A stretch of DNA of 63,908 bases, counting the filler, from Pelomyxa schiedti (lineage: Eukaryota; Protista; Evosea), in NCBI GenBank assembly GCA_020536535.1. It is 10 parts of 10 records of this genome, joined end to end, with 100 filler letters (N's around TTAATTAATTAA, not from the genome) between each part and the next. Parts side by side here need not be neighbours in the genome. Positions count along the whole stretch, not along the records: positions 18,170 to 30,217 come from JAHLWZ010001223.1; 9 more parts are not named here. One strand, given 5' to 3'. The position numbers and the translations under genes are program-made. The first letter of the stretch is position 1, and every line of letters starts with the position of its first letter. Of this stretch, positions 3,429 to 30,217 are shown piece after piece. The notes below the pieces were generated by a model. It was not told the origin of the DNA. It saw nothing but the letters and a program-made list of their open reading frames with translations, and did not search any database.

Positions 3429-4430
3429 AATCATAGGTGGGAATAGTGACATTGTGTGGTGTATTTTTGTTCGCGTTTAAGAGGATGGGAGTGAATCACC
3501 ACGGCACTTGTCAGACCACAAAACCATTTTGGGCTTGAAAGCGCACTGAGAACAGCCCGTCTTCATTGATACCATTAGAGCACAAGGCGGCGAAGCTTCT
3601 TGGTATCGCCGTTCAACCCCCAAACAACATCCCACTGCCCCACAATCCCACATTTTTCGTTCGTCTGGGCATCGCTGCTTGCAACTTCAACGGCAGCGTC
3701 TCAACTTTCTACTAAAAAGATTTTTTCATCACTCCGCCCCGTCGAATTGCTTTTCAGCTCGTTTTTCAGCTTGTCGGTGCGTTGTGCGTCGGCACATCAG
3801 TGCATCAGTGTCTTCACACATCTGCACATCAGCACGTCGGCGCCGGCCCTCAAAAAACAAATTTCTTTTTTTTTGTTTTGTTGTTTGTTTTGTCAGGGGT
3901 GTAGCTGCATGTACTCATCAACGAGACTTGCCGATAAATGAGGAGAGGTTGTCAGCCATCATAAGTCATCAGCTCAGTAGCTACTCCAAGTCAGGAAGCC
4001 AGTTGTGCAAGCACGGTGTGACAACAACACAACTGTGTTGTTGTGGTCATCAGTCAAATTGAGCATATTTGCCACAAAAATAATTGCCACAACACCTGTG
4101 CGTGCTGAGAGAGTTAGATTTGTTGTTTTAAAAAATGCTGTTAGGTTCGCCTTTAAAAGCACAGAGGTGCCTTTTTTTTCCTTTTCGAAAAAGAAATTAA
4201 TTAATTTTTTATTTAATTAATTTCCACCATTCCCGCCGGGTGTAGTTTAGTCCCTTCTACTGAAAATTGAATCGGTGAAAGAACGCCGTTGCGCTGACTG
4301 TCATTAGTTCCATTACATCATGTGCTTTTTCCTCTATGTAAAATAACTGCCCCTCCAGATAAATAAAGTAATGTTTTTTTTTCAGACCAAAGTCCCAAAG
4401 GTGAATAAATAAGATAAGAACTTTGTGGTG

Positions 4431-7400
4431 TTAAAGCCAATGCACACAGCGAGCAACCTCAATGGGGACAGCCATCTTGCGCACGCAGTCATCACAGCGG
4501 AAATAAGGGCACTCAGGCACAGTGCAACCCCAGAAGGAGTTCATGTTTCCACAAGAGCACCCAGGTGTGCGTTCTCTTCTGTTGTTTAGATTAGAACAAA
4601 ATCAAGTGGGCCACAAATTTCGTGTGTGTGAGTGAGAGAACACACACCTCCTCACAACAGGGTGATCGTGATCTGGAAAGGCAACCTCCGTGCATGTCAC
4701 AGGATCGCGATCGAACAGTGAAACGTACATCGTTGGTCCAGAGCCCGACACGGCGAGGGTCCACCGTGCCTGAGTCCGGTCGCCCCATGTTGCGTGCCGC
4801 ATCCTGCTGGGTGAGAACGTTGTCTTCCTGAACATGTCGCTGGCACCCGACGGAGCACGGCCTGTCTCGAGATCGTCTCTGTTGTCTGCTTGGATCAGCC
4901 TGCAACCCCAGGCTTTGGGATCTCCATCTTGGTTGTCGATGCCTCTCTTGATGAGCCACACGAGCAGTCCACTCCCTGGCAGGTCTCTGTCTGGGCCCAC
5001 TCTCTGCCGGTTTTCCAAGATGAAATACTCACCCTCTGGGAAGTTGGGATTCTCGATGCACGCAAACTGTCTCTCAGAGAGGCTGTACTCCATCTCGTAG
5101 TTCGACATGATGTCGAGTGACTCTTCCCAGCCAACCAAGAGCTTCAGGTGGGTGCAAACCTGTGAAAGGTTTATCAGCCAAATCGTTGATATCAACCAGC
5201 CAAACCTGTGCAGGACATGTGTCTGAGAAGCTGCTCATGAGACAAAACTTCCCAACACCCTTGGATGGGCTCTGGAGAAAGTAGAGATCAGGAAAATCAC
5301 ACAACATATGTCCATTCTCGTGACAAAAGCACCCCAGAGAGAGTGCATATCCCATGTTGCAAACATTGTAATCCTTGGCGGACCCATAGTTTAAGGGGAC
5401 AGGCGGATCCAGGGAAATCGCACATGGCCAGAGGCCCTGAGGAAAGACATGTTATTGACAAACTTCAGGTTGCATTCCGAACCTGGCGATATCGCCCTTT
5501 GTCACCCGTGTAAAGTATGTTAATGGCTCGAACGTATTGCCTCGAATCTCTTGCCAGACCATCGAACACCCTTGGGTCATGTGCTTGGAAGTGCTCGATG
5601 ACCTCTCTGGCCAACTCGCGAATCCCGGCAGGCCACCTCAGGGTTGTATAGTGATCCCGCACGTGTCTCGTTGTATAGTACGGCGTCACTCTGCATGTGT
5701 AGTTGAGCCTCTTCCCTGAGTTGTAGTAAAAGTATTCAAAGACACTCCCATTGTTCCCAAAGCCTGTGTAATTTCGGTCATTGAAGAAAGCCTCAATGTC
5801 TCCTGTTGTAAACGGCCCGTGACCTTCACCAAGAAACTTCACGGGAATGGACAGTCCCTTCAGGTCACCGGTTATGAGGGGTCGGTTCACAAGGTCTGGC
5901 GCAGGCGCCGCACCAGTCTCCTCAAAAACTTCAGATTTGGGAGTGCCTTTTTGTCTGAATGTACCCAGATGCTGAAAGAGGAGGTCTATTCCCTCCTCAT
6001 ATCTCTCCTGCCAGCGTGGCTTCGGGAGCTCGCAGTCAAGCACAGGCATGTCTGGCCTGAGGTGTGCGGCAACGCCAGGAGCCACGTCTGCACCAGTGAG
6101 AGAAACACGAACGGGCGACGGTGCCAACTCCCCTGTGTCAGTGAGGCGAGCAATGCACCAATATCCACCAGAATCCAACACCTGTGTCAATGTCGGTCAA
6201 TAAAGAAAAACCGGTTGTTGTTTGGGCTCTACTCACAATCGTGTGCCCAGAGAAGTCTTCGTAAAATGTTTGGCCGTTCTCAGTGCACTCTGCGGCGTAC
6301 ACCATGGTTTCGTCACGGTTCCTCAGAACGGGTAGCACCTTCGGTGGAGAAAGCCAATGCACACAGCGAGCAACCTCAATGGGGACAGCCATCTTGCGCA
6401 CGCAGTCATCACAGCGGAAATAAGGGCAATCAGGCACAGTGCAACCCCAGAAGGAGTTCATGTTTCCACAAGAGCACCCTGAACTTGTGCGTTCATTTCT
6501 GTTGTTTTTGTTGTGATTAGAACAAAATCAAGTGGGCCACAAATTTCGTGTGTGTGAGTGAGAGAACACACACCTCCTCACAACAAGGTGATCGTGATCT
6601 GGAAAGGCAACCCCCGTGCATGTCACAGGATCGCGATCGAACAGTGAAACGTACATCGTTGGTCCAGAGTCCGACACGGCGAGGGTCCACCGTGCCTGAG
6701 TCCGGTCGCTCCATGTTGCGTGCCGCATCCTGCTGGGTGAGAACGTTGTCTTCCTGAACATGTCGCTGGCACCCGACGGAGCACGGCCTGTCTCGAGATC
6801 GTCTCTGTTGTCTGCTTGGATCAGCCTGCAACCCCAGGCTTTGGGATCACTATCTTGGTTGTCGATGCCTCTCTTGATGAGCCACACGAGCAGTCCACTC
6901 CCTGGCAGGTCTCTGTCTGGGCCCACTCTCTGCCGGTTTTCCAAGATGAAATACTCACCTTCTGGGCAGTTGGGATTCTCGATGCATGCAAACTGTCTCT
7001 CAGAGAGGCTGTACTCCATCTCGTAGTTCGACATGATGTCGAATGACTCTTCCCAGCCAACCAAGAGCTTCAGGTAGGCGCAAACCTGTGAAAGGTTTAT
7101 CAGCCAAATCGTTGATATCAACCAGACAAGCCTGTGCAGGACATGTGTCTGAGAAGCTGCTCATGAGACAAAACTTCCCAACACCCTTGGATGGGCTCTG
7201 GAGAAAGTAGAGATCAGGAAAACCACACAACATATGTCCATTTGTCTGGCAGAGAAGCCCCAGAGAGAGTGCATATCCCATGTTGCAAACATTGTAATCC
7301 TTGGCGGACCCATAGTTTAAGGGGACAGGCGGATCCAGGGAACTCTCACATGGCCAGAGGCCCTGAGGAAAGACATGTTATTGGCAAACTTCAGATTGCA

Positions 7401-8120
7401 TTCCGAACCTGGCGATATCGCCCTTTGTCACCCGTGTAAAGTATGTTAATGGCTCGAACGTATTCGCTCGAATCTCTTGCCAGACCATCGAACACCCTTG
7501 GGTCATGTGCTTGGAAGTGCTCGATGACCTCTCTGGCCAACTCGCGAATCCCGGCAGGCCACCTCAGGGTTGTATAGTGATCCCGCACGTGTCTCGTTGT
7601 ATAGTACGGCGTCACTCTGCATGTGTAGTTGAGCCTCTTCCCTGAGTTGTAGTAAAAGTATTCAAAGACACTCCCATTGTTCCCAAAGCCTGTGTAATTT
7701 CGATCATTGAAGAAAGCCTCAATGTCTTCTGTTGTAAACGGCCCGTGTTCTTCACCAAGAAACTTCACAGGGAGGCACAGCCCTTTCAGCTCTCCCGACA
7801 CGATGCGTCGGTTCGCCATGTTCAGCCCAATGCTTAGTAAAGAGTACGGCCTGAGGTGTGTGGCAACGCCAGGAGCCACGTCTGCACCAGTGAGAGAAAC
7901 ACGAACGGGCGACGGTGCCAACTCCCCCGTGTGAGTGAGGCGAGCAATGCACCAATATCCATCAGAATTCAACACCTGTGTCAATGTCGGTCAATAAAGA
8001 AAAACCGGTTGTTGTTTGGGCTCTACTCACAATCGTGTGCCCAGAGAAGTCTTCGTAAAATGTTTGGCCGTTCTCAGTGCACACGATGCTGTGGATCACG
8101 GTGTCGTCACGGTTCCTCAG
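4431..8120. repeat. Direct tandem duplication, ~1.9 kb offset
   Basis: 4434-5860 closely matches 6351-7790 (offset 1926 over the C-terminal part), introns included. Confidence 0.95.
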
Positions 8121-8147
8121 ATCGCGTCGCGCGTTTTGTGTAGCCAT
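4431..8147 (-). CDS. M6-family (immune inhibitor A-like) metalloprotease with two tandem [prodomain-M6-Cys/His finger] units in one spliced ORF
   Basis: Motifs GNNGSVFEYFYYNS, GLWP, CHENGHMLCDFPDLY (5308-5322), GVGKFCLMS, EYFILENRQ...LPGSGLLVW. Introns at the same sites in both units. Unit 1 reads through TCT (6348-6350) where unit 2 has TAA (4431-4433). Confidence 0.85.
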
Positions 8148-9430
8148 GTTTGGTTTGTTTGTTATTTCTGATAAAGTTTCTTACTCCAACAATATTTGCG
8201 CTTTCGAAGAAGAAATTGTGCAAGTACGTAAGACACAGTTGCACCAAACCTTTTTTATCTCTTAATTATTTTCTTCCTTCACCACCCCGCCCAGAACGTG
8301 GCTGTTGGTGGCCTCAATCCTTGCGTAGCTACTGGTACTCATGGAACTTTAACAAAAAATTTTTGCCTGGCCCAAAATGGAGAGCACGGCGATGGAGATG
8401 TGAGAGGGGTGCAAGGGCATGAGGGTGGTGGGTGTGGAGGTGAGGTGGATGTCAGCCCTTTTGGCATCTGTGGAATTGAGTGTGGCTCTCAGCTACAAAA
8501 GCCGGCAAGGCACCATCTATAATAATAGAGGTGAGACTGAAAAAGAAAAAAGGAGACACATACCAGTGTCACTGGTGCCGAAAAGGCTCGCACTGCGCAA
8601 TGCTGGGAGGGCTGTTCAAGGTTGAATGGTGGGGGAAAAAAAACCTGGTATTGGAGGTGAGGCAAGATTGAGGGTGTAAATGAACGTGAAAGCGGAGCAA
8701 ACCCGCACACATTCTCCTGGACCTGCCTGTCGGTCTGTGTTACCTATTATGTTTCGGAAATACTACTGGACCAATGCCACTTGGCAGGGTTCATGCCTCT
8801 GTAAATAGTTAGAAGCAAGTGAGAACTCGAGGGAAAACCTACCTTTCGAGTATGAGAAATCGGGAGTGTAACACTGACAAGCATGGCTCCAACACGTAGC
8901 AGGCCAAAGAAAAACGTACCCGCCGAAGAAAAATAGGTTCACAAAGAGCGGAAAGAACACCTCAAAGAGCAAGGGTTTCCAGATCAGAACTAGGTCACGA
9001 TTTGTATTTCGGTGTAAATTCAGAACAGGTTGCACGCCATGCCACTACCTAACGCACCAGAGCCGACAAACGACAGCCCACATCGAAGCGTACAAGTAAC
9101 AAAACGGTACAGCCATATTTTGTGGTGAATCTGGGCACGAAGCTGTCAGACACTTTTTTTCGGCCCCCTCACTATTTGGCTGAATAAAAAAAACACCAGA
9201 CCGCCGATCCTGAGCGACGATAACTGACAGCGTTCCGGTCTGTTGATTATTTTATTCAGCCATTTTTTCTTTATCCCACGAAGCTTCCACCTTTTTTCGA
9301 CAGCATACAGGGGAGAGTACCAGCGAGGTTGCACTTGATGGTTACCAGAACGAAAGACCCTAGTCTTTCTTTATTTTATTTATATATGTTCAAGGCATGT
9401 GCATAGGTGTGGACCCAGAAAGGCGGTGGT

Positions 9431-9877
9431 TTAAGAGCAGGGATGATAAAGCTGCCGAGGTGGAGGAACCACGGGGGTAGACACAGCTTCCAGGTGCCTC
9501 TGGTACCAAGCGCATTCGTGCTGCAACTCGGCCCACCCGGGCCCGTCATCTCCCAGAAGTCGTTCATGCAATCGCTTGGGAATGTGGTCGACAGTTGCTG
9601 GATCAAAGTTCGTTGTTGCGCCAGATCTTATGGGTGCACGTATGGAAGTCGCAACGAGTTCGTTCGTCGGAGCCAGCAGATTGGCGAAGCACCAGTAGCC
9701 CGCACCGTCAAGGACCTGTAAGTTTGTTAGCGCAGTGTGATTGTGATGGCCCGAAGAAGGAACCATTGTGTGGCCATCTAAGTATTCGAAAAACGTGTTG
9801 CCGTCGGGGTAGTTGACCTCGTATGCGTCCACCTCCGTGTCATCTGCGTTCCTAACGTCGCATGGTGTGCGTTCCAT
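9431..9877 (-). CDS. Stand-alone homolog of the M6 protease N-terminal prodomain
   Basis: VRNADDTEVDAYEVNYPDGNTFFEYLDGHTM|VLDGAGYWCFANL aligns with LRNRDDTVIHSIVCTENGQTFYEDFSGHTI|VLNSDGYWCIARL, with the same intron position. Stops before any catalytic domain. Confidence 0.65.
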   Translation of the reverse strand: MERTPCDVRNADDTEVDAYEVNYPDGNTFFEYLDGHTMVPSSGHHNHTALTNLQVLDGAGYWCFANLLAPTNELVATSIRAPIRSGATTNFDPATVDHIPKRLHERLLGDDGPGWAELQHECAWYQRHLEAVSTPVVPPPRQLYHPCS

Positions 9878-10304
9878 GTACGGCTTTGTCCCTTTGTGTC
9901 GTGTTTGTTTGGGCTCGTCGTGTGGCGTTTTTCTTGTTGTTATCTTTTTCAAAACATGTCCTGTCGTTTTCTTGCCTCGTTCTTGCTGTCTTCGCTGCTC
10001 AACAAAATGGCTTCTATTGGCTTACTTACTATTCCATACTTTTTCACGTTTTTTTTCGCGAAAGTTTAATCGATTTTTTTCTAAAACGCGACGATTCGCG
10101 AATTAGAAATAGAAATAGAGAAATCAACTGGGAATCTGTTTTTTGAACCCAATAGACCAATCTGTGTTGCGGATCGTACTTCGAATAAATTTAATTTAGT
10201 ACTATTCGTCGAATGTCGAATGCCTGTTACTATTTGGTATTCGGTTCTTTTGTTGTTGTACGTCGGAAAGTGTCTGCCCACACTATTGGTGGGGGTAGAT
10301 ACAA

Positions 10305-12230
10305 TTAATAGTTGCCTACATAAAGTGTTTGTACCTTGCGTGCCCCGTTAACGTAAGATGTACGTGTCCCTTTTTGCCGGATTTGCGACAGTCTAAGAGG
10401 CCACAAAAAAAAACCCTTCGCATAACAATCAATAATGAGGACCGGTGGTGTCCAAAGGGGTACAAATTGGTGGGGTTCACAGTGGCCCCGGTTTGGGTTC
10501 TTCCAATCTGTGCTAGCTTTTTTTATTTCTTGGGCATGGGTGTAAGGTGTAGTGGGGTGCTGGGGCAGCATGCGTAGCCAGAGCCAGGGGTCCTGGGAGC
10601 ACATGGAAGGATGCAGGAGCAAGGAGCCGGGGCTGGTTGCAGTATACCTTGCCGTTGTCATCCACATGTTTCACCTGAACAATTTTGTTAGCAGTTGGAA
10701 AGTAGAAGAACAATCATACCCAACTCGAAGTAGCGCTGGTTGTCATGGCTGGACTCCATCATTCCGGGTATCTGCCGGCATGTTAGCAGGCTCAGGGAAG
10801 GCTAGAGTGGGGCACAAACCGAATTTGGAGTCGGTCTGGAACAATTTCCAAAGTGTCGGCTTAAGTCTGGGGAAAAAGTGAGAGGAAGAAAGAGGAAAAA
10901 CAAGGAGACCTCAGCCCTGAAGTCCAAATTGGCCAGAACCACTTCCAAAAGTGATTCCCCTATCTCCTGTCCATCTGCGAGATGCCGATCGCTTCCTTAC
11001 AATACACTTGTCACAAACCTACTTTCCCAGCACATTTTCCTTGGAATGCTATTTGATAGGGATGCCATGTCTAAGATTTTGATGGGTTCTGCACTGCCAC
11101 GGAGGAATCCAAGCTTGTAGGATGCCCCTTTGGTTGAGTGTTAGCATTATTCATGTATTCAATTGGAAAGGTACCATCTTCTGCGAGGCAATACTGGTAA
11201 ATTTCTAACCTAGTGCCCACTTGATCTGCAATTATATTGTGCAACTTGAAAGGAAGATCATTCAAGGGGCACCAGTCCCCCCCCAGGTATCAAATGGCAT
11301 TCCAAGGAAAATGTGCTGGGAAAGTAGGTTTGTGACAAGTGGAGGAACATTAGGTTGAGTGTAGATTCGAGTTCTAATACACAATTTCCGAGATGCAAGG
11401 GGTGAAATAGGCTGGTGTTTGCACAGATTTCTTCATCCCGGATATATGACCCTTAAGAGCCTGATCACTGTGAAAATTCTCGTTCCTAACGAAGGTTGCC
11501 AGATCCAAGTTGAATTGCTGTCTGATGGTGCTGCCTGTAGGCCTGCACTCGTAGTCTTATACGTGCCATCCCCGGCAAGAGCTCTCCAGAGGGGAAGTTG
11601 CCCTGGTTCCAGTGCCAGCAGTTCTTGACAGACTTCTGACCTTTCCACTTGTGAGATATTCAAGTATAAGTAGAAGAACGGCAAACTGCGTTAAAGACTC
11701 AAACGAGAGTGTATCTCCTTCCTTTCTAAGTGTGGCCATAATCGATCCACCTTTCAACACCTGGTGAAAACAGCGGTACACAGCTATAAGACATCACTGC
11801 ATATAGATTCTCTTCTTTGCAGAGCCCTGCAGCTTCTGCAGATGGAAGTCGTGAGGAAAAACCACCTGGTTTGTGAATGGTCAGTGGATACTAACAAAGA
11901 GAGAGAGAGCTACTTTGACATGAGCCTCTTCTAGAGCTTCGTAGAGGACTTGCCAAGCATATGGTTGCCCAACCCAGAGATCGGGGGGGATATGTGACTG
12001 AAAAATAGCCGAAGCACACGCACACTCTGCACACATTGCTGAGCCTGTAGTGGCACTTGTGGATGCTGTGGAGGCACTTGTGGATGCTTTAGAGGCACTT
12101 GTGGATGCTGTAGAGCTGGGGTTTGATAAAGATTCCGTAGCACTTATGTTTCTCAGGCTGGCTGGCCGAGGCATATTAAGAGGCTCCTTTAGAGGCAGGT
12201 GTATGAATCTCCTTCGAGATGAGTGGTGGA
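10305..12230 (-). pseudogene. Degenerate multi-exon hypothetical gene(s)
   Basis: Exon-like pieces with GT-AG boundaries (e.g. LSFESLTQFAVLLLILEYLTSGK|ELLALEPGQLPLW), in-frame stops, and a 21-bp STSASTA coding repeat at ~12050-12110. No recognisable family. Confidence 0.25.
11005..11341. repeat. ~54-bp inverted repeat pair, ~230-bp spacer
   Basis: 11005-11058 is the reverse complement of 11288-11341 (45 bp perfect, then one mismatch). Confidence 0.9.
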
Positions 12231-18169: not shown

Positions 18170-18601
18170 TAATGAAAAAGGCACTGGCTGTACCACACAA
18201 CCAACAAGCAAGCCAATTGAGTCCAAACAACGAAAACACACACACAGCCACTGTGCCCCCATAAGTAAAGTAAAGTAAATTGCTTCACCTCGCGAAGGAA
18301 TTTCCCTTTCCTGCTCCAGAGAATCGGCCTCGGCGCTGGCCTTGGCGTCGCGACCAGCCCCCGCGCCCCCGCCGCCGCCGGTCTTGGTTGCCACCGCGTC
18401 GGCGTTGGGACCGTTGTCGCCGCCACCGGCTTGAGCGGTCGTGTCGCCACGATCATGGGCTGGTGGTGAGGGTGGTGGTTGCGGTTGCTCGGCACCAACA
18501 ACACGCGGGCGCTTGGGCTCTGGCTCTGAGGGAACTACTACTGACTGATCGTCGGCATCACCGTGGCTCGCGTGAGGAGTGGCACTCCCTGCTGATTGCA
18601 T
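18170..18601 (-). CDS. Hypothetical protein, first exon(s), truncated by contig end
   Basis: MQSAGSATPHASHGDADDQ...EPEPKRPR (NLS-like)...EIPSR, then GTGAAG donor near 18288. Confidence 0.45.
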
Positions 18602-19550
18602 CCGTGTGACTTTTAAAAAAAAAAAAATTTGACGCATCGAGTGCAATGCCCATGGCGGTTGTCTCACGTGTTGAGTACTCACCCAATAATGATGATCAGT
18701 GGTTCTGTGAAGTCCGAGGAAACGAACGTTTTCCGCATCCAAGACGTAGTGGGTGTGACATCGGTGTCAGGCACGAACAACAGTTGCAATCAATGCTATG
18801 CTCCTGTGCTCCTTTGACAATTGTTTGTACTGCTGATTTTACTATGCCTGCTTCCATCCCTTGGGCAAAGTGTTTGTGGTGACTCAGCAGTGTGTTGCCT
18901 GCTGGTGTAGCGCTTGTCTCAGGGGGCCTTTGGTGTTTGGCAGGCCTTATAATCCACCATGGAGGTGGCGGTGAACTTGTTATTGAAACAGGTTCTGAAG
19001 CAAGTGGGTGTTATTCCAGGAGCGTACACAACTGCAGACACTTCAAGCCAGTGGTGTTTGGAGCCACTGATGTACAGAGGTCATGGGCAATGCACAGTGC
19101 ATTGATCTGTTTGAGAAGGTCCGCTGCGGGATTGAAAGAAGATTGGTCCAGCTTGAGGCCAGTTCACTTCAAAATGCAACCTGTCCCTCTTCTTTTGGGG
19201 AGTGGGTGGTGTTTGTTCTGACAGTGCATTTGCATCGTCTACACTGACTCAGGTTCATTAAACTGACTGTCGGGGCCAGCCGGCAACGATAACGACAGCG
19301 CCGGTAGCACAATCGACAACCACAGTCGTCGTAGTCGCTTGGGCAGAGCCGTAACAGTGGCGCCCAGGTAGTCTGGGTCCCAGACAATCGGCACCACCAT
19401 TACTGCTGACAAGTCGTCGAAGATTTCCGAGCGAAAAGGCACTTTGGCACCCGTTCAGACTACTTCCCTGCCTCTTACCTTCTCTTTCTGAATCGCTATG
19501 GCGTTTCACTCTGGAGCAGCTTCGTTCCCGAAAAACATTTTATCACTTTC

Positions 19551-21023
19551 ATGATCGCCAACCATCGCCAACCGCAGTCGAGAGAGCATGTTGGAAGGGC
19601 GATGAGTGTGGCACCCAGGTTCCGCCCCTCCTACTCATCGTCGTCCTCGCAGTCAACAATCGCGGAGCCCGGCACTACCACCACGCCCAAGGAGACGGCC
19701 AGGGACCAATTCCGCGCCATGGCGGCGGGCGCGCACCCGCGGTGCGGCGCGCGGTGCCCACTGTGGCTCATGGTAGCCAGATACAACAACAGCTCAAGCA
19801 CGATTATGGGTGGTGGAGGGGGAGGGGGCCGCCCAGGTGAGGATGGGACTCTGGCACTGAGGCTGGTGTGGGCGTGGATCGTGGAAACCTCGAGGTTCTA
19901 CTGCTTGAGGCTCTGGGGCGAAACAGGCACGGGCTACGGCTTCGTGGTGGCGCTTCGCGTGTCGCCACTGCTGCTCGCACTCACACACAAGATGTGGTGG
20001 TGGGCGGGACTGAGCGGCCCACGCGAGATTGTGGGGGCCAACCAGGACTACCTCGTCGTCGCGAGGGTGGCGACGGAGAGGCGCGCAAGGGAAATCTATC
20101 TGCAGGACAGGGCCACTGGCGAGAGGGTGAAAATGCTGCCGTCTTTTGGCGGTGACTACAGTCGGCGTCCAAAGTGCCTAGATGCTACCAATGGGAAATG
20201 GTTTGTGGTGTGTGATTCAGGTCGAGGGGAGATGACTGTTGTCGAGGTTCCAAGGAAGGGTTGTTCAGCAACAGGTGAAAGAGCATCTGAACCCACAAGA
20301 ATCAGAAAGCCCACTGTAGTTTCACTCAGGGCAAGGTGGAAAAAAGGCAGGCCTGAGTTTGTGTGTGGCCACGAAGATCAGGTGGTCCTTCACTGTTGTG
20401 ACTTGCAACGGCCAGCCCGTTTTTTTGAGCTTGTTCTTGTGGATGTTGCACGGACCTGTTCATCAAACAAACTTGTGGTGTTGAGTGCAACTGTTCCCAG
20501 ATTGATTGATCTGCCTCCAGACATTCGCAGATATGATCGATACGATCTCTTTATAGGAAGACGTTGCTTTGCATTTCTCAAAGAGAATGGTTGCCGCTGC
20601 TTCGTCATGTTGGAATCCCAGGTCTTGCGAGGCATCCTTCCCTTTGTCATCATGGACGAAGGAACAGGGAAGCTGCAACCAATGTCTCCTGGGCCAAAAC
20701 CAGACAGTTGGGGTGGCGATTGGTGTGTGTCATGGTTGAACAACTCACAGTTCTGCGTTTTCAAAGGCAGTAAAGGCCACTATGAGGTGTGGGGTGTGAA
20801 TGACTCGACCAAACCGGTGAGGACACAACGGTGCCTCTGTTGTTGGGCTGCCACCAGTGCGTTTGTTGAGGGTGGCCTGCTTTTCCAAATGAGTGAAGGA
20901 GAGAAAGAGATGCACGTGACTGAGGAGTCCACTGGTTCTCATGTCGTCACATTCCAGTCATTCAGAAAACTGAGACCAGACCTACTTGAAACCCATCACT
21001 CCTTTCCTCTAAGCTGCCCCTGA
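19551..21023 (+). CDS. Expanded 'QF-x-AL...HPRCG' family protein
   Basis: 490-aa intronless ORF: ARDQFRAMAAGAHPRCG, LVWAW, N-x-KW, LVDVA, YEVW, EGGLLF, VTEESTG, shared with paralogs in this window. Confidence 0.8.
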   Translation: MIANHRQPQSREHVGRAMSVAPRFRPSYSSSSSQSTIAEPGTTTTPKETARDQFRAMAAGAHPRCGARCPLWLMVARYNNSSSTIMGGGGGGGRPGEDGTLALRLVWAWIVETSRFYCLRLWGETGTGYGFVVALRVSPLLLALTHKMWWWAGLSGPREIVGANQDYLVVARVATERRAREIYLQDRATGERVKMLPSFGGDYSRRPKCLDATNGKWFVVCDSGRGEMTVVEVPRKGCSATGERASEPTRIRKPTVVSLRARWKKGRPEFVCGHEDQVVLHCCDLQRPARFFELVLVDVARTCSSNKLVVLSATVPRLIDLPPDIRRYDRYDLFIGRRCFAFLKENGCRCFVMLESQVLRGILPFVIMDEGTGKLQPMSPGPKPDSWGGDWCVSWLNNSQFCVFKGSKGHYEVWGVNDSTKPVRTQRCLCCWAATSAFVEGGLLFQMSEGEKEMHVTEESTGSHVVTFQSFRKLRPDLLETHHSFPLSCP

Positions 21024-21436
21024 CAGACCTTGTCCCAAGAGACTCTTTTCTCTCTGGTGTGAATAGACGAGACAGAACACGATCTGTTCAGAAAGACTTT
21101 TTTTTTTCCTCTCTTTCCGTACGAACGCCAACCTTGCATTGGACTGGACGCCTTACGTATCTGGTAGTTCTCCACGGTACACAACACCCTGTGCCAACCA
21201 AAAACCAAGTTGCCGTATTAGTGTCACAATGACCCACAAAGAAAGGAAAAAATGGCTGGGGCTTAATGGAATGATCACAAAGCTGCCACGATCCCGAGAA
21301 GTTTCTCAAGAAAGCAAAGGTGCACCATGTGTGAGTGGCCTGCCGTCAACCAACTAGAGAGTGAAGTCGGCGCGAACATCAGCGACCCAAGAGAAAAGCA
21401 CCGTCAGACTGGGGGCAAAAAACCGATTTTTTTGCG

Positions 21437-23327
21437 ATGGCCGATGGGGCGGCCGGGTTGGTGGTAACCACAATTGCGGGAGTAAGATCGTCTAACTGCC
21501 GCGTGTTTGAGTTTGGTGCCGAGTCACTGAAGCCGAGAGGAATTAACCTCATTGCTGCCATGTCAAGAGTTTGCAGGGCAAGTGTTCTAAATATAAATAA
21601 GAATATCTCTACTGTAACAACCACTATGCATATCCGTATTATTTATTATCTATAAAAAATGTATTTATTCGAAGTTACGAAGTTCTTGTATTTCTTTTGA
21701 TGACCTATAGTATGTTATGCTTTTGTTTTATACTTTATTGTTGTTTTTAATTACCCCTGTTACAGTCGTGGAATGCTGCATGTAACGCAAGTCGTGTGTG
21801 GGAGACACTGTATCGCATTGACTTCGGGCACTTTCCCTTGCAGACTGTTGATACATCTGGCGGGGCTACAAACTGGAAAGACCGCTACAAAACCAGATTC
21901 CTTCAGACTATTGTCATTCACCTCACAACTAAAATCCCACAGGACTCTCCCACGTAAGGATCTTTTCATACCACCATTCATTCTGATCACATTGTTTTCT
22001 TCGGTTTTTTACAGATTGTCCCCTGACTTTTTCAAATGTTGGATGTATTCATTCAATAAGTGCCCTCTGCATCTGGAAGTGTTCTGTGGGCTCCCTCCCC
22101 ACTTGGATATGAGACCGCCAGCTTTGGTGTCCATTCCCAGCAGAAAAGGGCCAGTTGGATGCATATCATTTATCTCGCAGTTCCTCCTCATTTCTGGGTG
22201 TCCGTATACCGAGGAAGACTTCACTCAGGTCAAGCGCCTTGTAATAATCTATCCACTAACTATCTTCAGATGGGAAGAGCACTTGCAGATCAAATTTTCG
22301 ACGAGGACACAGACGACAGAGATGTAAAATCTGTGCAAAATGTGATTGCCCACATATCCGGCAACACTTTGTTAACCCTGAACGTCGTGGTATGGAAGAT
22401 ATTATTGAAAGGAACCTAAATTCTTACAGGTTCTTGCAAAAGATCCTATTTTGGCTCTAATGAGTCATAAAAGGCGAAAGTTTGACCAGTTCCTTGATTA
22501 TGCACTTTTTGAAAGTCACGGTGTCTTACTTCACCCCATGTTTAAGTTTGTCTGTACTTCAAGCACCGAATTGCTCCTAATTCACTTCACTTCCAGGAGC
22601 TTGCGGAAATTCAACAGGCATCTGAGGAAAACTATTTCCGGCAAAGGGAAACCAGAAGCCGTCGTGTGGAACGGCGTCATTAGTCAAAGGAGTCTCCTGA
22701 ACCAAATGAAATGCTCGCAGCTTCAGTATTTTGGATGTCATTCCGACTGGTTGTTGTCCCCCACTGGCATTGAGAGCGTGATTAACAAAAAAAAAATATA
22801 AAGGGGAGGAGAAAGCATCCTTGAATGCCCAGAGGCATCAAGGTTGGCAAAATGTACAAGAGGGCTCGTGCGGTGGATGTTGCTAACATCAACCGGCTCC
22901 TCCATCAACTGGGTGTTTGATCCCCCTCATCATGTTCTGAACATGGCAATGTAGTACACTCATCCTTTTTTTTCCCTGAGCACCAGTTTTAAAATTCCAA
23001 AGATGGCACAATCAAGAAGATGAGGAAGAGGACAGTCTGAGTTCCAAGTATGGTCTAACTGAGGATGTAATGAACCGAATTGAGGAAGATTTCCGCAGGT
23101 TTTCTGATACACAAATACTCAAAACCAAACTTACCAGCTCTTCAGGGCTCAAGAGGAAAGAGGTCACTCTGATGAGGATTATGATAGCTCTGTATGTCTT
23201 TCTTCTTCCGCGCGGCCGTTCTCAAAAATATTCCCAGGTGGAACCCTTCAAACAGAGTCTGGAACAAGACATCGTTAAGCACAGTGATACTGGTCTCACC
23301 ACAGTCACTGATGGAACTGATTCCTAA
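21437..23327 (+). CDS. F-box-like protein, multi-exon
   Basis: RVFEF...IAAMSRVCR|SWNAACNASRVWETLYRIDFG...NWKDRYKTR is a typical F-box C-half plus following helix. In-frame join uses a GCAAGT donor (~21578) and TTACAG acceptor (21765). 3' exon structure uncertain. Confidence 0.6.
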
Positions 23328-23647
23328 CAAGCAAAAAAACACTGAATAGGAAAAACAAAAAAACAAAAAAACTTACGGCGTGAGTACAAGAGCCAATACA
23401 CCCACTCACCCACCTCGTAACCCTTCTAACTTTGTGAATTAAAGCCAAAAATAGATCATCTTTCGGTTTCAGCTAACGCAACTTTTTTGGTTTTTCATTG
23501 AACTCCGCTGGCGTGGGAATTGTGTGGGTCCTAGGCTTTGGATTGGCCGATGTGTACTTAGTGCCTAACTTGTCCTTCGGAATTTTCACTCAGTAAATAG
23601 CAGACATGCACAAATGGACACTCTACCTGCCTAAAAATTGTTGAAGA

Positions 23648-24640
23648 CTATGAATCTATGACAGTGTGGTAATCCATGAAAGCCAGCAGGAGATCGGTCT
23701 CAACATGAGTGATTGCATACCTGACCACTACTGTGCTGGTTGGCTCTGTTCCATCGGACTGGCATTGTGGTGCCGAACACTCCCACACAAAAACGCCACG
23801 GTTCCGCTGCATTGCAAGGGTCATTATGACCAGCAATGGTGCCAGATTACAATCCATGGGCTGCAGCACCCCTTCGATGGAGCACGTTTCGTTGGTGACG
23901 GTGTTGTGGATGTTTTGAACCAGTGAGGTGGAGCCCTGTGAAACCACGCAGATTGGATCCCCACCAAACACGATCATGTTGGTGGCAAAGGGAGGGCTCG
24001 GTCTTGTGAACAACGGCACTCTTGTGGAAGCTCCGCGTCGAGTCAATGTGGTGGAGTCTCAGGACGCCACCTGATCCGGGAACAGCGATGAGCAGAACAT
24101 CGGGGTCAGACTCGCAGAGTGCCGCGTCAGGAATGGGGGCCAGATGCAGGTTTAAAGTCACCCGGCACTCCTCTGTGAACAGCTTGCAGTGCCCGCTGTC
24201 TCCATCTGGATCGGCGTCGTCGCAGAGCCTCCACAGTATCATCTCTGTCAAATCCCTTGTCGAATTCAACAGCACGATCCAGCGGCTGTTGCAATACACA
24301 CTCGGTGCGTGAAATCGCGGATTCCTAGTGCCATCGCCCGGGAACAAGTTCCTCACCATGAAACCTTCCATCCACAATGTCAACCACCACACCTAACCCC
24401 AGCTTCTTCGTCACCAGCAGCCTGTCCTCACCAGTTGGCAAGTTTCTGAGAGTTGCCACTTGGTCTGGCTGTATCCTCCTTGCGATGTCCGGGGGGGGAG
24501 CCGATGGACCCAACCACCATCGACGAATCCGAGAAGCCTCCAAACGTCTCAAACATCACAGACCTCACAACGCCCACAGTCGGCGACAAGCAGAGCCACA
24601 AGTGCACCTCGTGCTCCAAATCTTTTGTAGTGCCATCTGA
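23648..24640 (-). pseudogene. Frameshifted, 5'-truncated member of the HPRCG-type family
   Basis: LWLCLSPTVGVV, YCNSRWIV and HIDSTRSF blocks spread over different frames. Confidence 0.55.
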
Positions 24641-24649
24641 CACAAGATT

Positions 24650-25145
24650 TCTGGGAAAGATAGCAGGCCTCAGTTTGTGTGTGGCAATGAAGACCAATTA
24701 TTCCTTCACTGCTGTGATTCTGGCAGCAGACCCGCATCATTTTTTGAGCTTGTTCTCGTGGATGTTGCACAGACATTCTCATCAAAGAGACTGGCAGTGT
24801 TGAGTTCAACTGTTCCAAGATTGGATGACATGCCGCCACACCTTCGCGGATATGAGTTCTTTTTTGGCAACAGCTCCTGTTTTGCATTCCTCAAACAGAA
24901 TAAGAGTGGCGAATTCCGCTGTTTTGTCATGAAAAGGAGTCCACACTCCATTTTCTCTTTTCCCTCTCCCTTTGTGGACTTCATCAGAATGGATGAGGGA
25001 ACAGGAAAACTGCAACCAATGTTTCAGGCCCCTGCAGCAACCAATCATTATCCTCTGTCACAGTTGAACCAATCACAGTTCTGTGCTTGTTTTTGGTCCC
25101 AAACAAGATGCCTATGAAGTGTGGGATGTGAATGAAACAAACAAC
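24650..25145 (+). pseudogene. Internal fragment paralogous to the 19551-21023 gene
   Basis: FVCGNEDQLFLHCCD...FFELVLVDVAQTFSSKRLAVLSSTVPRL...MDEGTGKLQPM...YEVWDVN closely matches 20350-20810. No 5' half; frameshift near 25110. Confidence 0.8.
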
Positions 25146-25384
25146 CCGGCTGCTGGTGTGGATGATGTTGATGCTTCCGTCGCACTGTTTGCTTTGTGGG
25201 CCGACGCTGGTAACATGTGACGGCGTTCTGGGAGCTAGATACCACAGAAAGGACTCTGACCCGGTCAGAGTGACCAGCCCACATAATAGACGAGACACAG
25301 AACACGACAACTGGTCGGGGTTTCTCTTGGATCTGTTAAGAGGAACTCCCTTCATTTCTCCGAATCAACAACTTCTTGAAAACC

Positions 25385-28300
25385 ATGATGACAACGACTT
25401 TGTCAAAGTCACGCGTGGGATCCAGGGAGTGGTTCATAGCCGCACATAGGGGCGACAGTGACGCACTGCGGCGTCTGCTGGCCGGCGACCGCGACCTGCT
25501 AAACTCTATAGACAACGGACGACAACGAGTGGTGTGAATTGCGTAGCAACTCTTTTTTTTTTCACACGATAATAATTCCTTTGGGCACACACAGACAGCG
25601 TTGCATACAGCCACGTGGGCAGGGAATCAGCGGTGCGTTGAGTTCCTATTGTCAATGAATGTCGATGTCAATTCTCAGGTAAGGGCCCTTATTTTGAGGT
25701 ACTCACTGACTCACCCACAAACTTGTATCTCTCACTTCACAGATTGTGTGTAATACTATCCTGATTATGTTTTCAATCCCTCTCCTCTAAAAACGTAAAT
25801 TCAGGGGCCGGCTGTACGTACTGTCATAACTTTTCAATCCTTTTATTGCGTTTATTCACTTGCTTCAATTTCTCTCTCTTTGCTTTGCTCTGTGGCATGT
25901 TCAGGGAGTGTGTTACTGCTCCCAACCCTTTTTATCACGTTTATTCATCAATTTTCTGACTTGCTTCAATTTCTCTCTCTTCACTTTGCTCTGTGGCATG
26001 TTCAGCTTGTGTGTAACTGCACCCAACCCTTTTTATCACGTTTATTCATCAGTTTTCTGACTTGCTTCAATTTCTCTCTCTTCACTTTGCTCTGTGGCAT
26101 GTTCAGTTTGTGTGTAACTTCTCCCAACCCTTTTTATCACGTTTATTCATCAATTTTCTGACTTGCTTCAATTTCTCTCTCTTTGCTTTGCTCTGTGGCA
26201 TGCTCAGGATGTGTGTAACTGCTCCCAACCCTTTTTATCACGTTTATTCATCAGTTTTCTGACTTGCTTCAATTTCTCTCTCTTTGCTTCTCTCTGTGAT
26301 AAACTCAGGGAGTGTGTAACTGCTCCCAACCCTTATTATCGCGTTTATTCATCAATTTTCTGACTTGCTTCAATTTCTCTCTCTTCACTTTGCTCTGTGG
26401 CATATTCAGCTTGTGTGTAACTGCTCCCAACCCTTTTTATCGCGTTTATTCATCAGTTTTCTGACTTGCTTCAATTTCTCTCTCTCTTTGCTTTGCTCTG
26501 TGGCATGTTCAGCTTGTGTGTAACTGCTCCCAACCCTTTTTATCATCAATTTTCTGACTTGCTTCAATTTCTCTCTCTTCGTTTTGCTCTGATGTTCAGT
26601 TTGTGTGTAACTGCTCCCAACCCTTTGTATCACGTTTATTCATCAATTTTCTGACTTGCTTCAATTTCTCTCTCTTTGCTTTGCTCTGTGGCATATTCAG
26701 AATGTGTGCAATTGCTCCCAACCCTTTTTACCACGTTTATTCATCAGTTTTCTGACTTGCTTCAATTTCTCTCTCTTCACTTTGCTCTGATGTTCAGCTT
26801 GTGTGTAACTGCTCCCAACCCTTTTTATCACGTTTATTCATCAGTTTTCTGACTTGCTTCAATTTCTCTCTCTTTTCTTTGCTCTGTGGCATGTTCAGTA
26901 TGTGTGTAACTGCTCCCAACCCTTTTTATCGCGTTTATTCATCAGTTTTCTGACTTGCTTCAATTTCTCTCTCTTTCTCTTCACTTTGCTCTGTGGCATG
27001 TTCAGCTTGTGTGTAACTGCTCCCAACCCTTTTTATCACGTTTATTCACCAGTTTTCTGACTTGCTTCAATTTCTCTCTCTTCACTTTGCTCTGTGGCAT
27101 GTTCAGGATGTGTGTAACTGCTCCCAACCCTTTTTATCGCGTTTATTCATCAGTTTTCTGACTTGCTTCAATTTCTCTCTGCAACACTTTATATCATTTT
27201 TCTTACTGTTTGATGGACACTTTTATCCTATTGCCACAAGGGAGTAAGTATACACTCCTTGGCAGCTTTTGTTCTAACTTTCCGCGATTTTTATGATAAT
27301 TTGCACTGCTGCAGATTGTATGAACTCCACTCTTTGAATATTGCCTGTGCTCACCTTCTTATTTTTCAGGAAGTACTACTTTTTTTCTTATTCTTGCTGT
27401 GTTACTCATATATTTTGGGGGTCTCCCTTTCAAATTGAAAGGGTGATGTACGTGGCCACCCCCCAATATCCTTTGTTTCCTTTACTTTATTTGATGCCTG
27501 ACCCAAAACTTAATTTTCGTGTCCCTCTCTCTCAGACGGCACTTCATCTTGCCTGCAGACAAGGAAACGTTAGAATTGTGGAACAACTTCTGTCTTGTGT
27601 GGGTATTGGCAGTCATATCAAGGTTGGTTTCCCCCTTTTTGATTGACATGTGTTGTAATTCCTGCTGGCACAGAACAAGAAGGGAAAAACAGCACTTGAG
27701 AGCTCAGAAAATGATAAAGTGCGTCAAGTATTCCAAGCTGTGTGTCCAGCCACAACATCATCAACAACGCAGGCAGTCACCTCTCCCAAAACAGCCCAAC
27801 AACAACAGCAATCACATCCGAGCCCACCCTCTGCTCCAAATAAGACATCACTGTCGTCACCCACCCCACCAAAACCACATCCACAACCAGCAACTGCAAG
27901 ACGTACCACAACAATGGGGACCAGGAAAGTGCTACCCAGAGCTCTTGATGAAGGTGGTGACACCATCAACAACATCAGGAAACAAGAGAGAGACTGCTGG
28001 GAATTCAAGGCAAGGCCGATGAAGAGTTTAGTGAAAAACCCCTTCCCCTCAAATGAAAATGCAAACGCACTTTGTGTTCAAAAGATGAGATCACGGAACT
28101 GAAGGCAAGAATCACACAATTGGAGGAAGAAAACACAAAGAACCTGAATCTTCTCCATGAAGAAACCAAACAACATGCGACTGCTCAACAAAGAATTAAA
28201 GAAATGAAACGAATCTATGAAGAAAGAGAAACAGACAACCAACAAAGATTTCATGAGCTTCAACAACAATGTTTGTCCTTTCAGATCTTCTTTTTTTGCA

Positions 28301-30217
28301 TTTCTCATTCTCGTTCATATGCACATCATCAAGGGAAAAATAATTCAGAGGTGTGTCTGTGTATATGTGTGTGTTTTGTTGTTTGCCTTGACGTTGACAA
28401 TAACAATAATAATCTCTTAACAACATGCATATACATACAGATGGAGCTCCAAAGGTTGCAAGAAAAAACCGTGTCCGACATGTCTGCAAAGAACAAGGGT
28501 GTGAACACACCCTCCTCCAGTTGAACTCATCATTGGCTCCCTCATCACTGGGGGGTTTTTTTTTCCCTTTTTTCCAAAAGCAGAACTCAAGGAACTGGAG
28601 GCACACATAACAACATTGGAGGAAGAAAGTGTGAAGAACCTTAAAAGGTTTTGTGACGAGAGAGCATCTGACCAACAAAGATTTCGTGATCTCCAATGCT
28701 GTTTGTGCTCTCTGCCCGCTCACGCACACTCCATCCCCTCCTTTTTTTTCTCAACCCTAACCCACCCTACACAACATACATGCAGCACAATAACGACGCC
28801 ACACCAACAATTCTAATTCTGTCAATATAGACATAAATCATGTGATATCACATATTGAACAAGGAGAAGGCACGTGGCGCAACATTCTCCTCCCTGAAAA
28901 CAATAAGACCAATGACTGCAAGCAATTGCAACTCAGGATCACGTTTGAGGATCTTCCCTCTTTTGATGAAATTGTGTGTGGATCCTGTCCCCTTCAAATG
29001 GTGCCTTCCTCTCTTGTGAAGCTCCCCCCTTTCTTCTTTTCTTTTCTTTTTGAAGCTTCCCCACCTCCCTTTTTTTTTTCGTTCTTTGCGATGTTTCTAA
29101 CTAACTGGTTGTTTGTCACAAAAGATGGTGCAGCTTATCGTTTCAAGGAAGTTTGGAGTTGAACCAACACAAGTGATTTTCACTGTCGGTTCAGAAAACA
29201 ACAACTCTGAGGATCTGCTGCCGACCGATTCATCCATTGCCTTGGGTGACATTCAACGACGACTACAACACAGCGGCAGCTGCAGAAACAGAGTTGTTGT
29301 TCAAATCAAGGTTCGAATCAAATCAACAATGTCAATCCAAGAGAAAGACCTGAAACTTGTTTCCCCACTTGGAGTCGGATCGTATGGAACTGTTTTCAAG
29401 TGCACTTTCCATGATGATCACAACGCAATGACCACTTCCTCCTCATCATCCTCATCGGAAAGAACAGCAACGTTTGTGGCAATTAAAGCACTTCACGAAG
29501 CCATCAAGTCTGAGTTCAACATCACCAAGTTTCAGCAGGAAGCTTTGGTGAGTGAGACGGAGTTTTGTCTCTGATAATCTTGCGTTCTAAAATTCACGAT
29601 CCATCCACTCACCAGGTTTCGTCAAGCTTGAGGCATCCAAACATTGTGAGATGCCTTGGAACTTGCGTCACTAGCACAGGGTCACTCTGGATCGTGTCCG
29701 AACTTATGGAAATGAGTCTCAGGCAGCTCCTTCAACATGTTTGTTTTTTGCACGCTCTTCCTCCCACTCGTTTTTGGTTGAACTCACTCAGTTTGTAAAT
29801 ATGAATCTATATGTACATACATACACCAACACAATTATTAGAAAGATTTGACATTCATGGAAGTTGTGGCAGTTTCTTCCGGAATTGCCAAAGGAATGAC
29901 TGCACTTCACAGGTTTCATTCAATTTCAGTTCTTCTTGCCACTCTTTTTAAAAATAATATCATTTACGTTGATCTGCCTAAAAACACAGGAGGAACTACA
30001 TGCACCGGGACCTGAGCAGCAACAATGTTCTCCTCGATTCTTGTGGAACTCCAAAAATAACTGACTTTGGTACTTTCTGCAATTGACACAGACACAGACA
30101 CAGACACAGACACAGACACAGACACAGACACAGACAACACACAGACACACATACACACACCTCAACACACTCAACTCAACCAACTGAAAATGAAGGAGTA
30201 TCAAGAGCCCTCCAGCA
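25385..30217 (+). CDS. Ankyrin-repeat / coiled-coil / tyrosine-kinase-like protein kinase (3' end truncated)
   Basis: ANK exons WFIAAHRGD, TALHTATWAGNQRCVEFLLSMNVDVNSQ, TALHLACRQGNVRIVEQLL, NKKGKTAL; Pro/Gln linker; coiled-coil exons; kinase motifs LGVGSYGTV, VAIKAL, LRHPNIV, HRDLSSNNVLL, KITDFG. Confidence 0.92.
25743..27447 (+). other. Array of 19 candidate in-frame micro-exons
   Basis: AG|x|GT at 25743 ATT, 25805 GGGCCGGCT, 25905 GGA, 26006 CTT, 26107 TTT, 26208 GAT, 26309 GGA, 26410 CTT, 26513 CTT, 26600 TTT, 26701 AAT, 26798 CTT, 26899 TAT, 27006 CTT, 27107 GAT, 27241 GGA, 27315 ATT, 27370 GAA, 27442 GGTGAT. Confidence 0.8.
25840..27180 (+). repeat. ~101-bp tandem repeat, 13 full units, each an intron plus 3-nt micro-exon
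   Basis: Unit: GTGTGTAACTGCTCCCAACCC...TTTTCTGAC (branch-like)...pyrimidine tract...TTCAG-NNN. Confidence 0.95.
30085..30150 (+). repeat. (GACACA)n intronic microsatellite
   Basis: About 8 perfect hexamers after the DFG exon donor. Confidence 0.9.

Follow-up and report, generated by a model that had tools for sequence, protein, structure and literature searches.

Arrays of one-codon micro-exons at an ankyrin hairpin loop in a gene family of Pelomyxa schiedti

Background

What does a cell make of an interval between two ankyrin-repeat exons that is filled with exon-like units, most of them a single codon long? Such an interval lies in an ankyrin-kinase gene of the anaerobic amoeba Pelomyxa schiedti, whose genes are rich in introns (7.43 per gene, 98.4% of them GT-AG; PMC8887013). 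A preliminary description of the window (the whole stretch of joined P. schiedti DNA, 63,908 nt) read the interval as 19 AG-exon-GT units, from which combinatorial splicing would assemble the binding loop of an ankyrin repeat in a kinase codon by codon.

Results and discussion

The 19-unit array of the window gene

All 19 units were found at the claimed positions between 25678 and 27536 (Table 1), in the order I, GPA, G, L, F, D, G, L, L, F, N, L, Y, L, D, G, I, E, GD, and all are in phase 0, free of stop codons and separated by 20 introns of 52-131 nt. The full array amounts to at most 22 residues, the rest of the protein being encoded by ordinary exons, and its GD unit provides the G-x that is otherwise absent from the ankyrin G-x-T motif. 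Pfam and protein searches, run on single exons one by one, put Ank repeats and a PK_Tyr_Ser-Thr domain in one predicted gene, and the domain order is identical in paralogs. The kinase exon is 100% identical to KAH3732212.1 (P0002), whose nine nearest relatives in the protein search are all P. schiedti proteins; the NCBI model of this gene begins at 27912 and leaves the ankyrin exons outside. Exon 1 starts with a polar stretch followed by the ankyrin cap, and the later of its two donors is the one used in the paralog model P0041. Outside the array, the intron at 28026-28084 is supported by contigs of RNA runs, a GTGTGT donor serves an ordinary intron of the NCBI model (28351), and a GTGTGA donor at 28499 is also supported by RNA.

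Table 1. Features of the ankyrin-kinase gene and its micro-exon array (window coordinates)
Feature	Position	Strand	Remark
Contig with the ankyrin-kinase gene	18170-30217 (12,048 nt)		P. schiedti contig; holds the micro-exon array
Exon 1, N-terminal ankyrin cap	25385..25531	+	Donor 25532; alternative in-frame donor 25529
Exon 2, ankyrin repeat, C-terminal DVNSQ	25595..25678	+	Pfam Ank, E 3e-6
First micro-exon, Ile	25743..25745	+	Conserved; Ile in 11/14 genes
9-nt micro-exon GPA (G-x-P-like in paralogs)	25805..25813	+	9 nt in 14/14 full-layout genes
Tandem repeat, 13 units of ~101 bp	25858..27180	+	89% matches
Cassette 1, Gly	25905..25907	+	
Cassette 2, Leu	26006..26008	+	
Cassette 3, Phe	26107..26109	+	
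Cassette 4, Asp	26208..26210	+	
Cassette 5, Gly	26309..26311	+	
Cassette 6, Leu	26410..26412	+	
Cassette 7, Leu	26513..26515	+	
Cassette 8, Phe	26600..26602	+	
Cassette 9, Asn	26701..26703	+	
Cassette 10, Leu	26798..26800	+	
Cassette 11, Tyr	26899..26901	+	
Cassette 12, Leu	27006..27008	+	
Cassette 13, Asp	27107..27109	+	
Micro-exon Gly	27241..27243	+	Invariant 14/14; surroundings 27238-27262 are a candidate docking site
Micro-exon Ile	27315..27317	+	Invariant 14/14
Micro-exon Glu	27370..27372	+	Glu in 11/14; joined to GD in RNA contig of paralog L005
6-nt micro-exon GD	27442..27447	+	Invariant 14/14; both sides spliced in L005 RNA contig
Exon 3, ankyrin repeat, N-terminal TALHLA	27536..27622	+	Pfam Ank, E 5e-6
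Exons: last ankyrin half-repeat, low-complexity linker, coiled coil	27674..29000	+	
Exons of the linker domain and of the kinase domain (TKL-type)	29125..30083	+	Pfam PK_Tyr_Ser-Thr; truncated by contig end

The central cassettes coincide with a tandem repeat, each 101-bp unit of which comprises a whole intron (a GTGTGT donor, a branch-like CTGAC about 50 nt upstream of the AG, and a pyrimidine tract) and one codon. Such a repeat alone could multiply one chance AG-NNN-GT, but this is contradicted by the codon-focused differences between its copies, which in the 13 units of the window gene differ at 56% of codon sites versus 5% of the sites elsewhere (binomial p 1.5e-4). Because the variation sits on the codon and not on the rest of the unit, the array is not trivial despite the tandem repeat. 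A scan of the array region with Rfam gave no family match, a pattern search for the repeat unit found nothing in JGI metagenomes, and the RNA of a unit has no notable fold, its pairing with the whole flanks not exceeding that of shuffled sequences. In the repeat (25858-27180) and in the paralogs, two cassette subtypes can be told apart by acceptor context, one with mostly T-ending and the other with A-ending codons, and the T-ending subtype carries GCATG immediately before the acceptor. We take this to resemble the RBFOX motif, perhaps by chance.

A gene family with arrays at the same site

A scan for other AG-NNN-GT arrays, which the preliminary description had suggested, was run on about 180 kb of fetched P. 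schiedti loci and gave 17 paralogous arrays at the same ankyrin site. These 17 further intervals, each preceding an exon 3, lie in twelve loci, and with that of the window gene there are 18 array loci; clusters of units were found nowhere else on either strand of the ~180 kb. The material is one draft assembly of amplified DNA from one species, in which unit counts may be inexact. All 251 units of a partly tuned parse are 3, 6 or 9 nt long, and 219 of them (87%) are of 3 nt. In an untuned spacing test on all arrays, 165 of 223 fixed donor motifs (74%) within the arrays followed an AG at a distance of exactly 3 nt; elsewhere in the loci, 13 of 514 (2.5%) did.

Fourteen genes share one layout: a 3-nt exon (Ile in 11), a 9-nt exon of the G-x-P-like type, 4-24 central cassettes, and then G, I, E and GD. 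The longest array has up to 30 micro-exons, most of them single-codon, and the array introns of the family are mostly 45-160 nt long. Three of the remaining loci are partial or irregular, and one gene (L006a) has only D, H, F and GD (L006:3820-4177), which, if all are kept, make an ankyrin loop of the canonical kind with five residues; downstream of it, at L006:7570-7870, there is a degenerate copy in which D and F are present. The idea that L006a represents the ancestral form was dropped as unsupported, since the tree is unrooted and the gene may be a deletion product.

As described earlier, the window gene does contain a kinase domain, but the array is the property of a gene family, and the ankyrin-array module is joined to kinase, SAM, or SAM plus U-box domains. 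Because SAM and SAM/U-box proteins carry the module as well, the presumed ankyrin-array sensor appears to have been swapped between output domains. The SAM and SAM/U-box carriers are found at L011:1-717, 7333-8483 and 9662-10665, and at L012:995-1874 and 3494-4416. The ankyrin exons themselves are single-copy, and the units that vary are codons. Protein searches for the module returned Pelomyxa relatives only, none of them transcript-derived across the array. The NCBI models of nearly all family genes break at the array; the only one that crosses it, P0041, has the insert GMP plus GD, but may be an ab initio prediction and was excluded from the evidence.

The kinases P0001-P0036 form a big Pelomyxa family with a conserved pre-kinase linker and swapped N-termini (ankyrin, LRR, ubiquitin-like and MORN-like). 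Relative to the array gene, related sequence on 27062-30075 reaches tens of times its contig depth, and the repeat unit hundreds of times. The family may therefore be larger than the 18 members seen, with tens of genes and hundreds of units suggested, although in amplified DNA such depths do not give copy number.

Selection on the codons

The central codons diversify fast, with a within-gene codon difference of 58%, versus 19% for the adjacent intron. Between nearest-neighbour units the differences are 0.59, 0.55 and 0.18 at codon positions 1-3, versus 0.08 in the flanks, a figure lowered by the fact that neighbours were picked by flank similarity, and among the 106 such pairs 83 are amino-acid-changing and none is silent. 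Stop codons are absent from all 143 cassettes, although base use predicts 6.2 (P 0.002), or 4.1 with every gene-codon pair entered only once (P 0.015). The cassettes use 17 amino acids, with Ala, Val and Lys absent (a codon for Val would look like a donor), and Tyr makes up 16% of them versus 1% in the family proteins. On a tree of the intron flanks the units cluster by gene (35 label changes versus 106 when shuffled), and units homogenise within genes; amino-acid changes on the same tree number 93 versus 107 shuffled, which amounts to almost free change.

The flank exons G, I and GD, on the other hand, encode the same amino acids in all 14 genes, with differences of 47-57% in the intron bases next to them, and the introns of the conserved flank exons as a whole diverge by 38-57%. 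Two opposed selections thus seem to act on the array, conserving its flank units and diversifying its central cassettes, the latter being the signature of a binding surface pressed to vary, as judged from a comparison of divergence rather than from formal dN/dS.

The same data bear on another reading, in which the central repeat, whether a minisatellite within an intron or a silent reservoir, is skipped and the flank micro-exons alone are used. The 13 units do form a plain tandem repeat, and the RNA seen (contigs on 27062-30075) covers E-GD-exon 3 and no central cassette; however, the variation is focused exactly on the three bases between AG and GT, and in many independent genes the 3-nt length is held, stops are avoided and the composition is skewed. 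We regard this explanation as very improbable.

RNA evidence

The RNA data are assembled contigs from four runs of one study, aligned to 27062-30075; two of the runs (X1 and X2) extend across introns in the manner of DNA, and the other two (X3 and X4) are RNA. A single X3 contig, of depth 7, reads through the intron before the Glu exon and continues as E-G-D-T-T-L-H, with two downstream introns removed. Its letters match the paralog L005, the sole fetched gene with that exon 3 start, and L005 DNA contains both of the introns removed. Because the contig keeps the 3-nt E and the 6-nt GD with their introns removed, codon-sized exons are spliced in this family: the last two micro-exons are spliced in one paralog, and in the molecule concerned the downstream introns were spliced before the intron upstream of the Glu exon. 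This contig and the family-wide conservation together support the reading of the units as real micro-exons in the ankyrin hairpin loop, and the architecture of the arrays, i.e. their layout, conservation and diversification, is established. A second RNA contig, without mismatch to the window gene, aligns from exactly 27536 and is preceded by 29 letters. No transcript across the central cassettes was found among the assembled contigs as aligned to 27062-30075; among the junctions listed, the sole RNA one across micro-exons, E-GD-exon 3, shows consecutive inclusion and not skipping.

The loop product and the rule of splicing

One detail of the preliminary description had to be given up. A canonical D-x-x-G-x loop picked from all 19 units is not the general product, since the flank units are conserved in a fixed order and exons for D or N are missing from 7 of 14 arrays. 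A variable tip on a fixed stem would describe the product better. The flanks alone encode 9 residues, the shortest arrays in full 13-14 and the longest 33. A related Pelomyxa ankyrin kinase has, at the matching hairpin, a 12-residue insert encoded by a single exon and ending in a similar hydrophobic-x-G-x-T pattern, which its model places in the loop between two intact repeats. One-exon loops in this related group of ankyrin kinases are of 12 residues in P0004 (L001:2218-2290) and P0007, and of 4 residues in P0033 (L011:4498-4545).

We propose that the family comprises intracellular ankyrin proteins of Pelomyxa with a kinase or SAM/U-box output, in which the hairpin loop is encoded by a chain of micro-exons. 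The conserved units I, G-x-P ... G, I, E and GD would be kept in most transcripts and form the fixed stem, and the one-codon cassettes, each inside a near-identical short intron, would be retained as variable ordered subsets, so that each gene could yield many loop sequences. Two points lead us to variable subsets: skipping any unit leaves the frame unchanged, and adjacent 3-nt exons can be spliced in succession only. Unequal crossing-over and selection on codons would continually renew the set of cassettes, and the tip formed by the loop would bind ligands in the manner of a CDR and signal to a kinase or ubiquitin-ligase domain. Its most likely role, as suggested by domain layout and selection only, is recognition of foreign or symbiont molecules. 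With variable inclusion the window gene could encode up to 4,384 distinct tips, 141 of them with three cassettes or fewer. It is argued for by the length of fully included loops, 13-33 residues and very hydrophobic in the long arrays, versus 12 in the intronless relative. On the other hand, genomic duplication alone would also select frame-neutral units, the introns are complete and of ordinary size, which makes full inclusion physically possible, and L006a in full is exactly the canonical D-H-F-G-D loop. On balance, inclusion of the central cassettes in variable ordered subsets, atop fast genomic turnover, seems to us somewhat probable. As for the further step, a CDR3-like loop built residue by residue via stochastic splicing, with dozens of genes and hundreds to thousands of variants per cell, we find our judgement evenly poised.

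Constitutive inclusion of all micro-exons would give one long loop (5-33 residues) per gene and leave diversification to the genome; loop length and content would vary between paralogs and alleles and not between transcripts, and the codon-sized split would be an evolvability device, permitting duplication, deletion and conversion of whole codons among 100-nt units. We consider it a serious, though less probable, rival. It agrees with L006a, which gives its canonical loop only with all units kept, with the RNA contig that retains E and GD consecutively, with the range of cassette numbers (4 to 24) and the within-gene homogenisation, and with the presence of a donor, a branch-like motif and an acceptor in every intron. 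However, it demands that 20-31 splices in a row, around 3-nt exons whose splice sites are nearly identical, proceed without error, and it would produce hydrophobic loops of 25-33 residues from the long arrays, while codons repeated within an array would add little to one product.

Repeated codons would likewise be wasteful under Dscam-like mutual exclusion, in which each transcript takes one cassette, or a run ending at a chosen cassette, and the donor regions of the cassettes compete to pair with a docking site around the Gly exon. The Gly-exon region is indeed the best or equal-best partner of the cassette donors in most genes. In 9 of the 14 genes it pairs better than 95% of 300 other donor windows, and in the window gene, L003 and L005 better than all 300; there is also a weak own-gene preference (p 0.012). 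This pairing may nevertheless be a by-product of purine versus pyrimidine runs, of a local hairpin of the Gly unit or of shared descent; it is absent in L004b, L007 and L008a, and compensatory changes are not clear. We think mutual exclusion improbable. The local hairpin of the Gly unit spans its own exon and donor. Steric exclusion of neighbouring exons is the mechanism of the tropomyosin type; for neighbouring cassettes it was rejected, the donor-to-branch distance being about 50 nt and exceeding whole introns in the window gene.

Comparison with known systems

The micro-exon genes (MEGs) of Schistosoma have successive, very short and fast-evolving exons and vary their proteins by alternative splicing (PMC10526429, PMC4350168), so that rows of tiny, fast-changing exons are common to both systems. 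MEG exons, however, are of 6-81 bp, mostly 15 bp, within introns of 0.1-5 kb, and encode a secreted protein with a signal peptide (PMC10526429). They span the whole protein, whereas the Pelomyxa array is limited to one ankyrin loop between ordinary exons, is made up largely of one-codon units and has introns (52-131 nt in the window gene) of a different scale; besides, the Pelomyxa proteins do not seem to be of the secreted type, to judge by the polar start of exon 1, the ankyrin cap and the kinase, SAM and U-box domains. In Dscam1, tandem-duplicated cassette exons at a recognition surface are chosen by docking/selector pairing (PMC8042237). The Pelomyxa cassettes are also tandem-duplicated homologous exons, with docking pairing as a candidate only, but a Dscam1 cassette is half or the whole of an Ig domain and strictly mutually exclusive, and a Pelomyxa cassette is one amino acid.

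The brown-algal ROCO LRR and NB-ARC-TPR proteins, proposed immune receptors, are multigene families with exon duplication, diversifying selection and alternative splicing (PMC3341825, PMC11378527). They share with the Pelomyxa family the character of intracellular repeat-domain signalling proteins with diversifying selection on shuffled units, found here by divergence and by silent/replacement counts, short of formal dN/dS; yet their exon (~72 bp) is a whole repeat, whereas in Pelomyxa the repeats are fixed and the inter-repeat loop varies by residue. Isolated 3-nt exons (RPS24, Drosophila hth, MAP4K5) and plant micro-exons of 1-15 nt can be spliced and skipped (PMC11162997, PMC7392893, PMC8632122, PMC8831610), but there are one to three of them per gene, they are conserved, and they do not form tandem arrays of diversified codons. 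The Pelomyxa arrays work like MEGs, Dscam1 and brown-algal ROCO genes, yet fail a defining feature of each. In LoopDARPins, an extended loop at the ankyrin beta-turn is reportedly engineered as a binding element. These and the DARPins, whose binding residues lie on the ankyrin beta-turn (PMC5777970), are artificial libraries, of which the Pelomyxa loop would be a natural, gene-encoded analogue. The view that one-codon cassette arrays are undescribed still stands, as none was found in the literature, in Pelomyxa or elsewhere, in a search that took in few subscription journals.

Duplicated cassette exons for receptor diversity were known already; neither the one-codon unit nor the putative stem-plus-tip design was found in the literature searched. 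Whatever the rule of splicing, no shuffling unit could be smaller than the one found here, which lies in a recognition loop, occurs up to 24 times over and is under strong pressure to change. If the cassettes are variably skipped, a single-celled amoeba would have a somatic receptor repertoire without a recombinase, which bears on the age and spread of anticipatory recognition; and if one-codon splicing is stochastic, an anticipatory repertoire would arise in a unicellular eukaryote by the spliceosome alone. If all cassettes are kept, 20-30 consecutive joins around 3-nt exons would be a natural experiment on intron definition and on the order of splicing. Because the NCBI models break at the array, similar arrays may hide in other intron-rich protists.

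Other features of the contig

Upstream of the ankyrin gene there is an intronless ORF of 490 aa (19551-21023) without a Pfam match, with a shorter, apparently broken relative at 24677-25117, and a minus-strand ORF of 181 aa (23847-24392), also without a match. A GACACA microsatellite (30085-30160) lies at the contig end, where the kinase gene is cut off.
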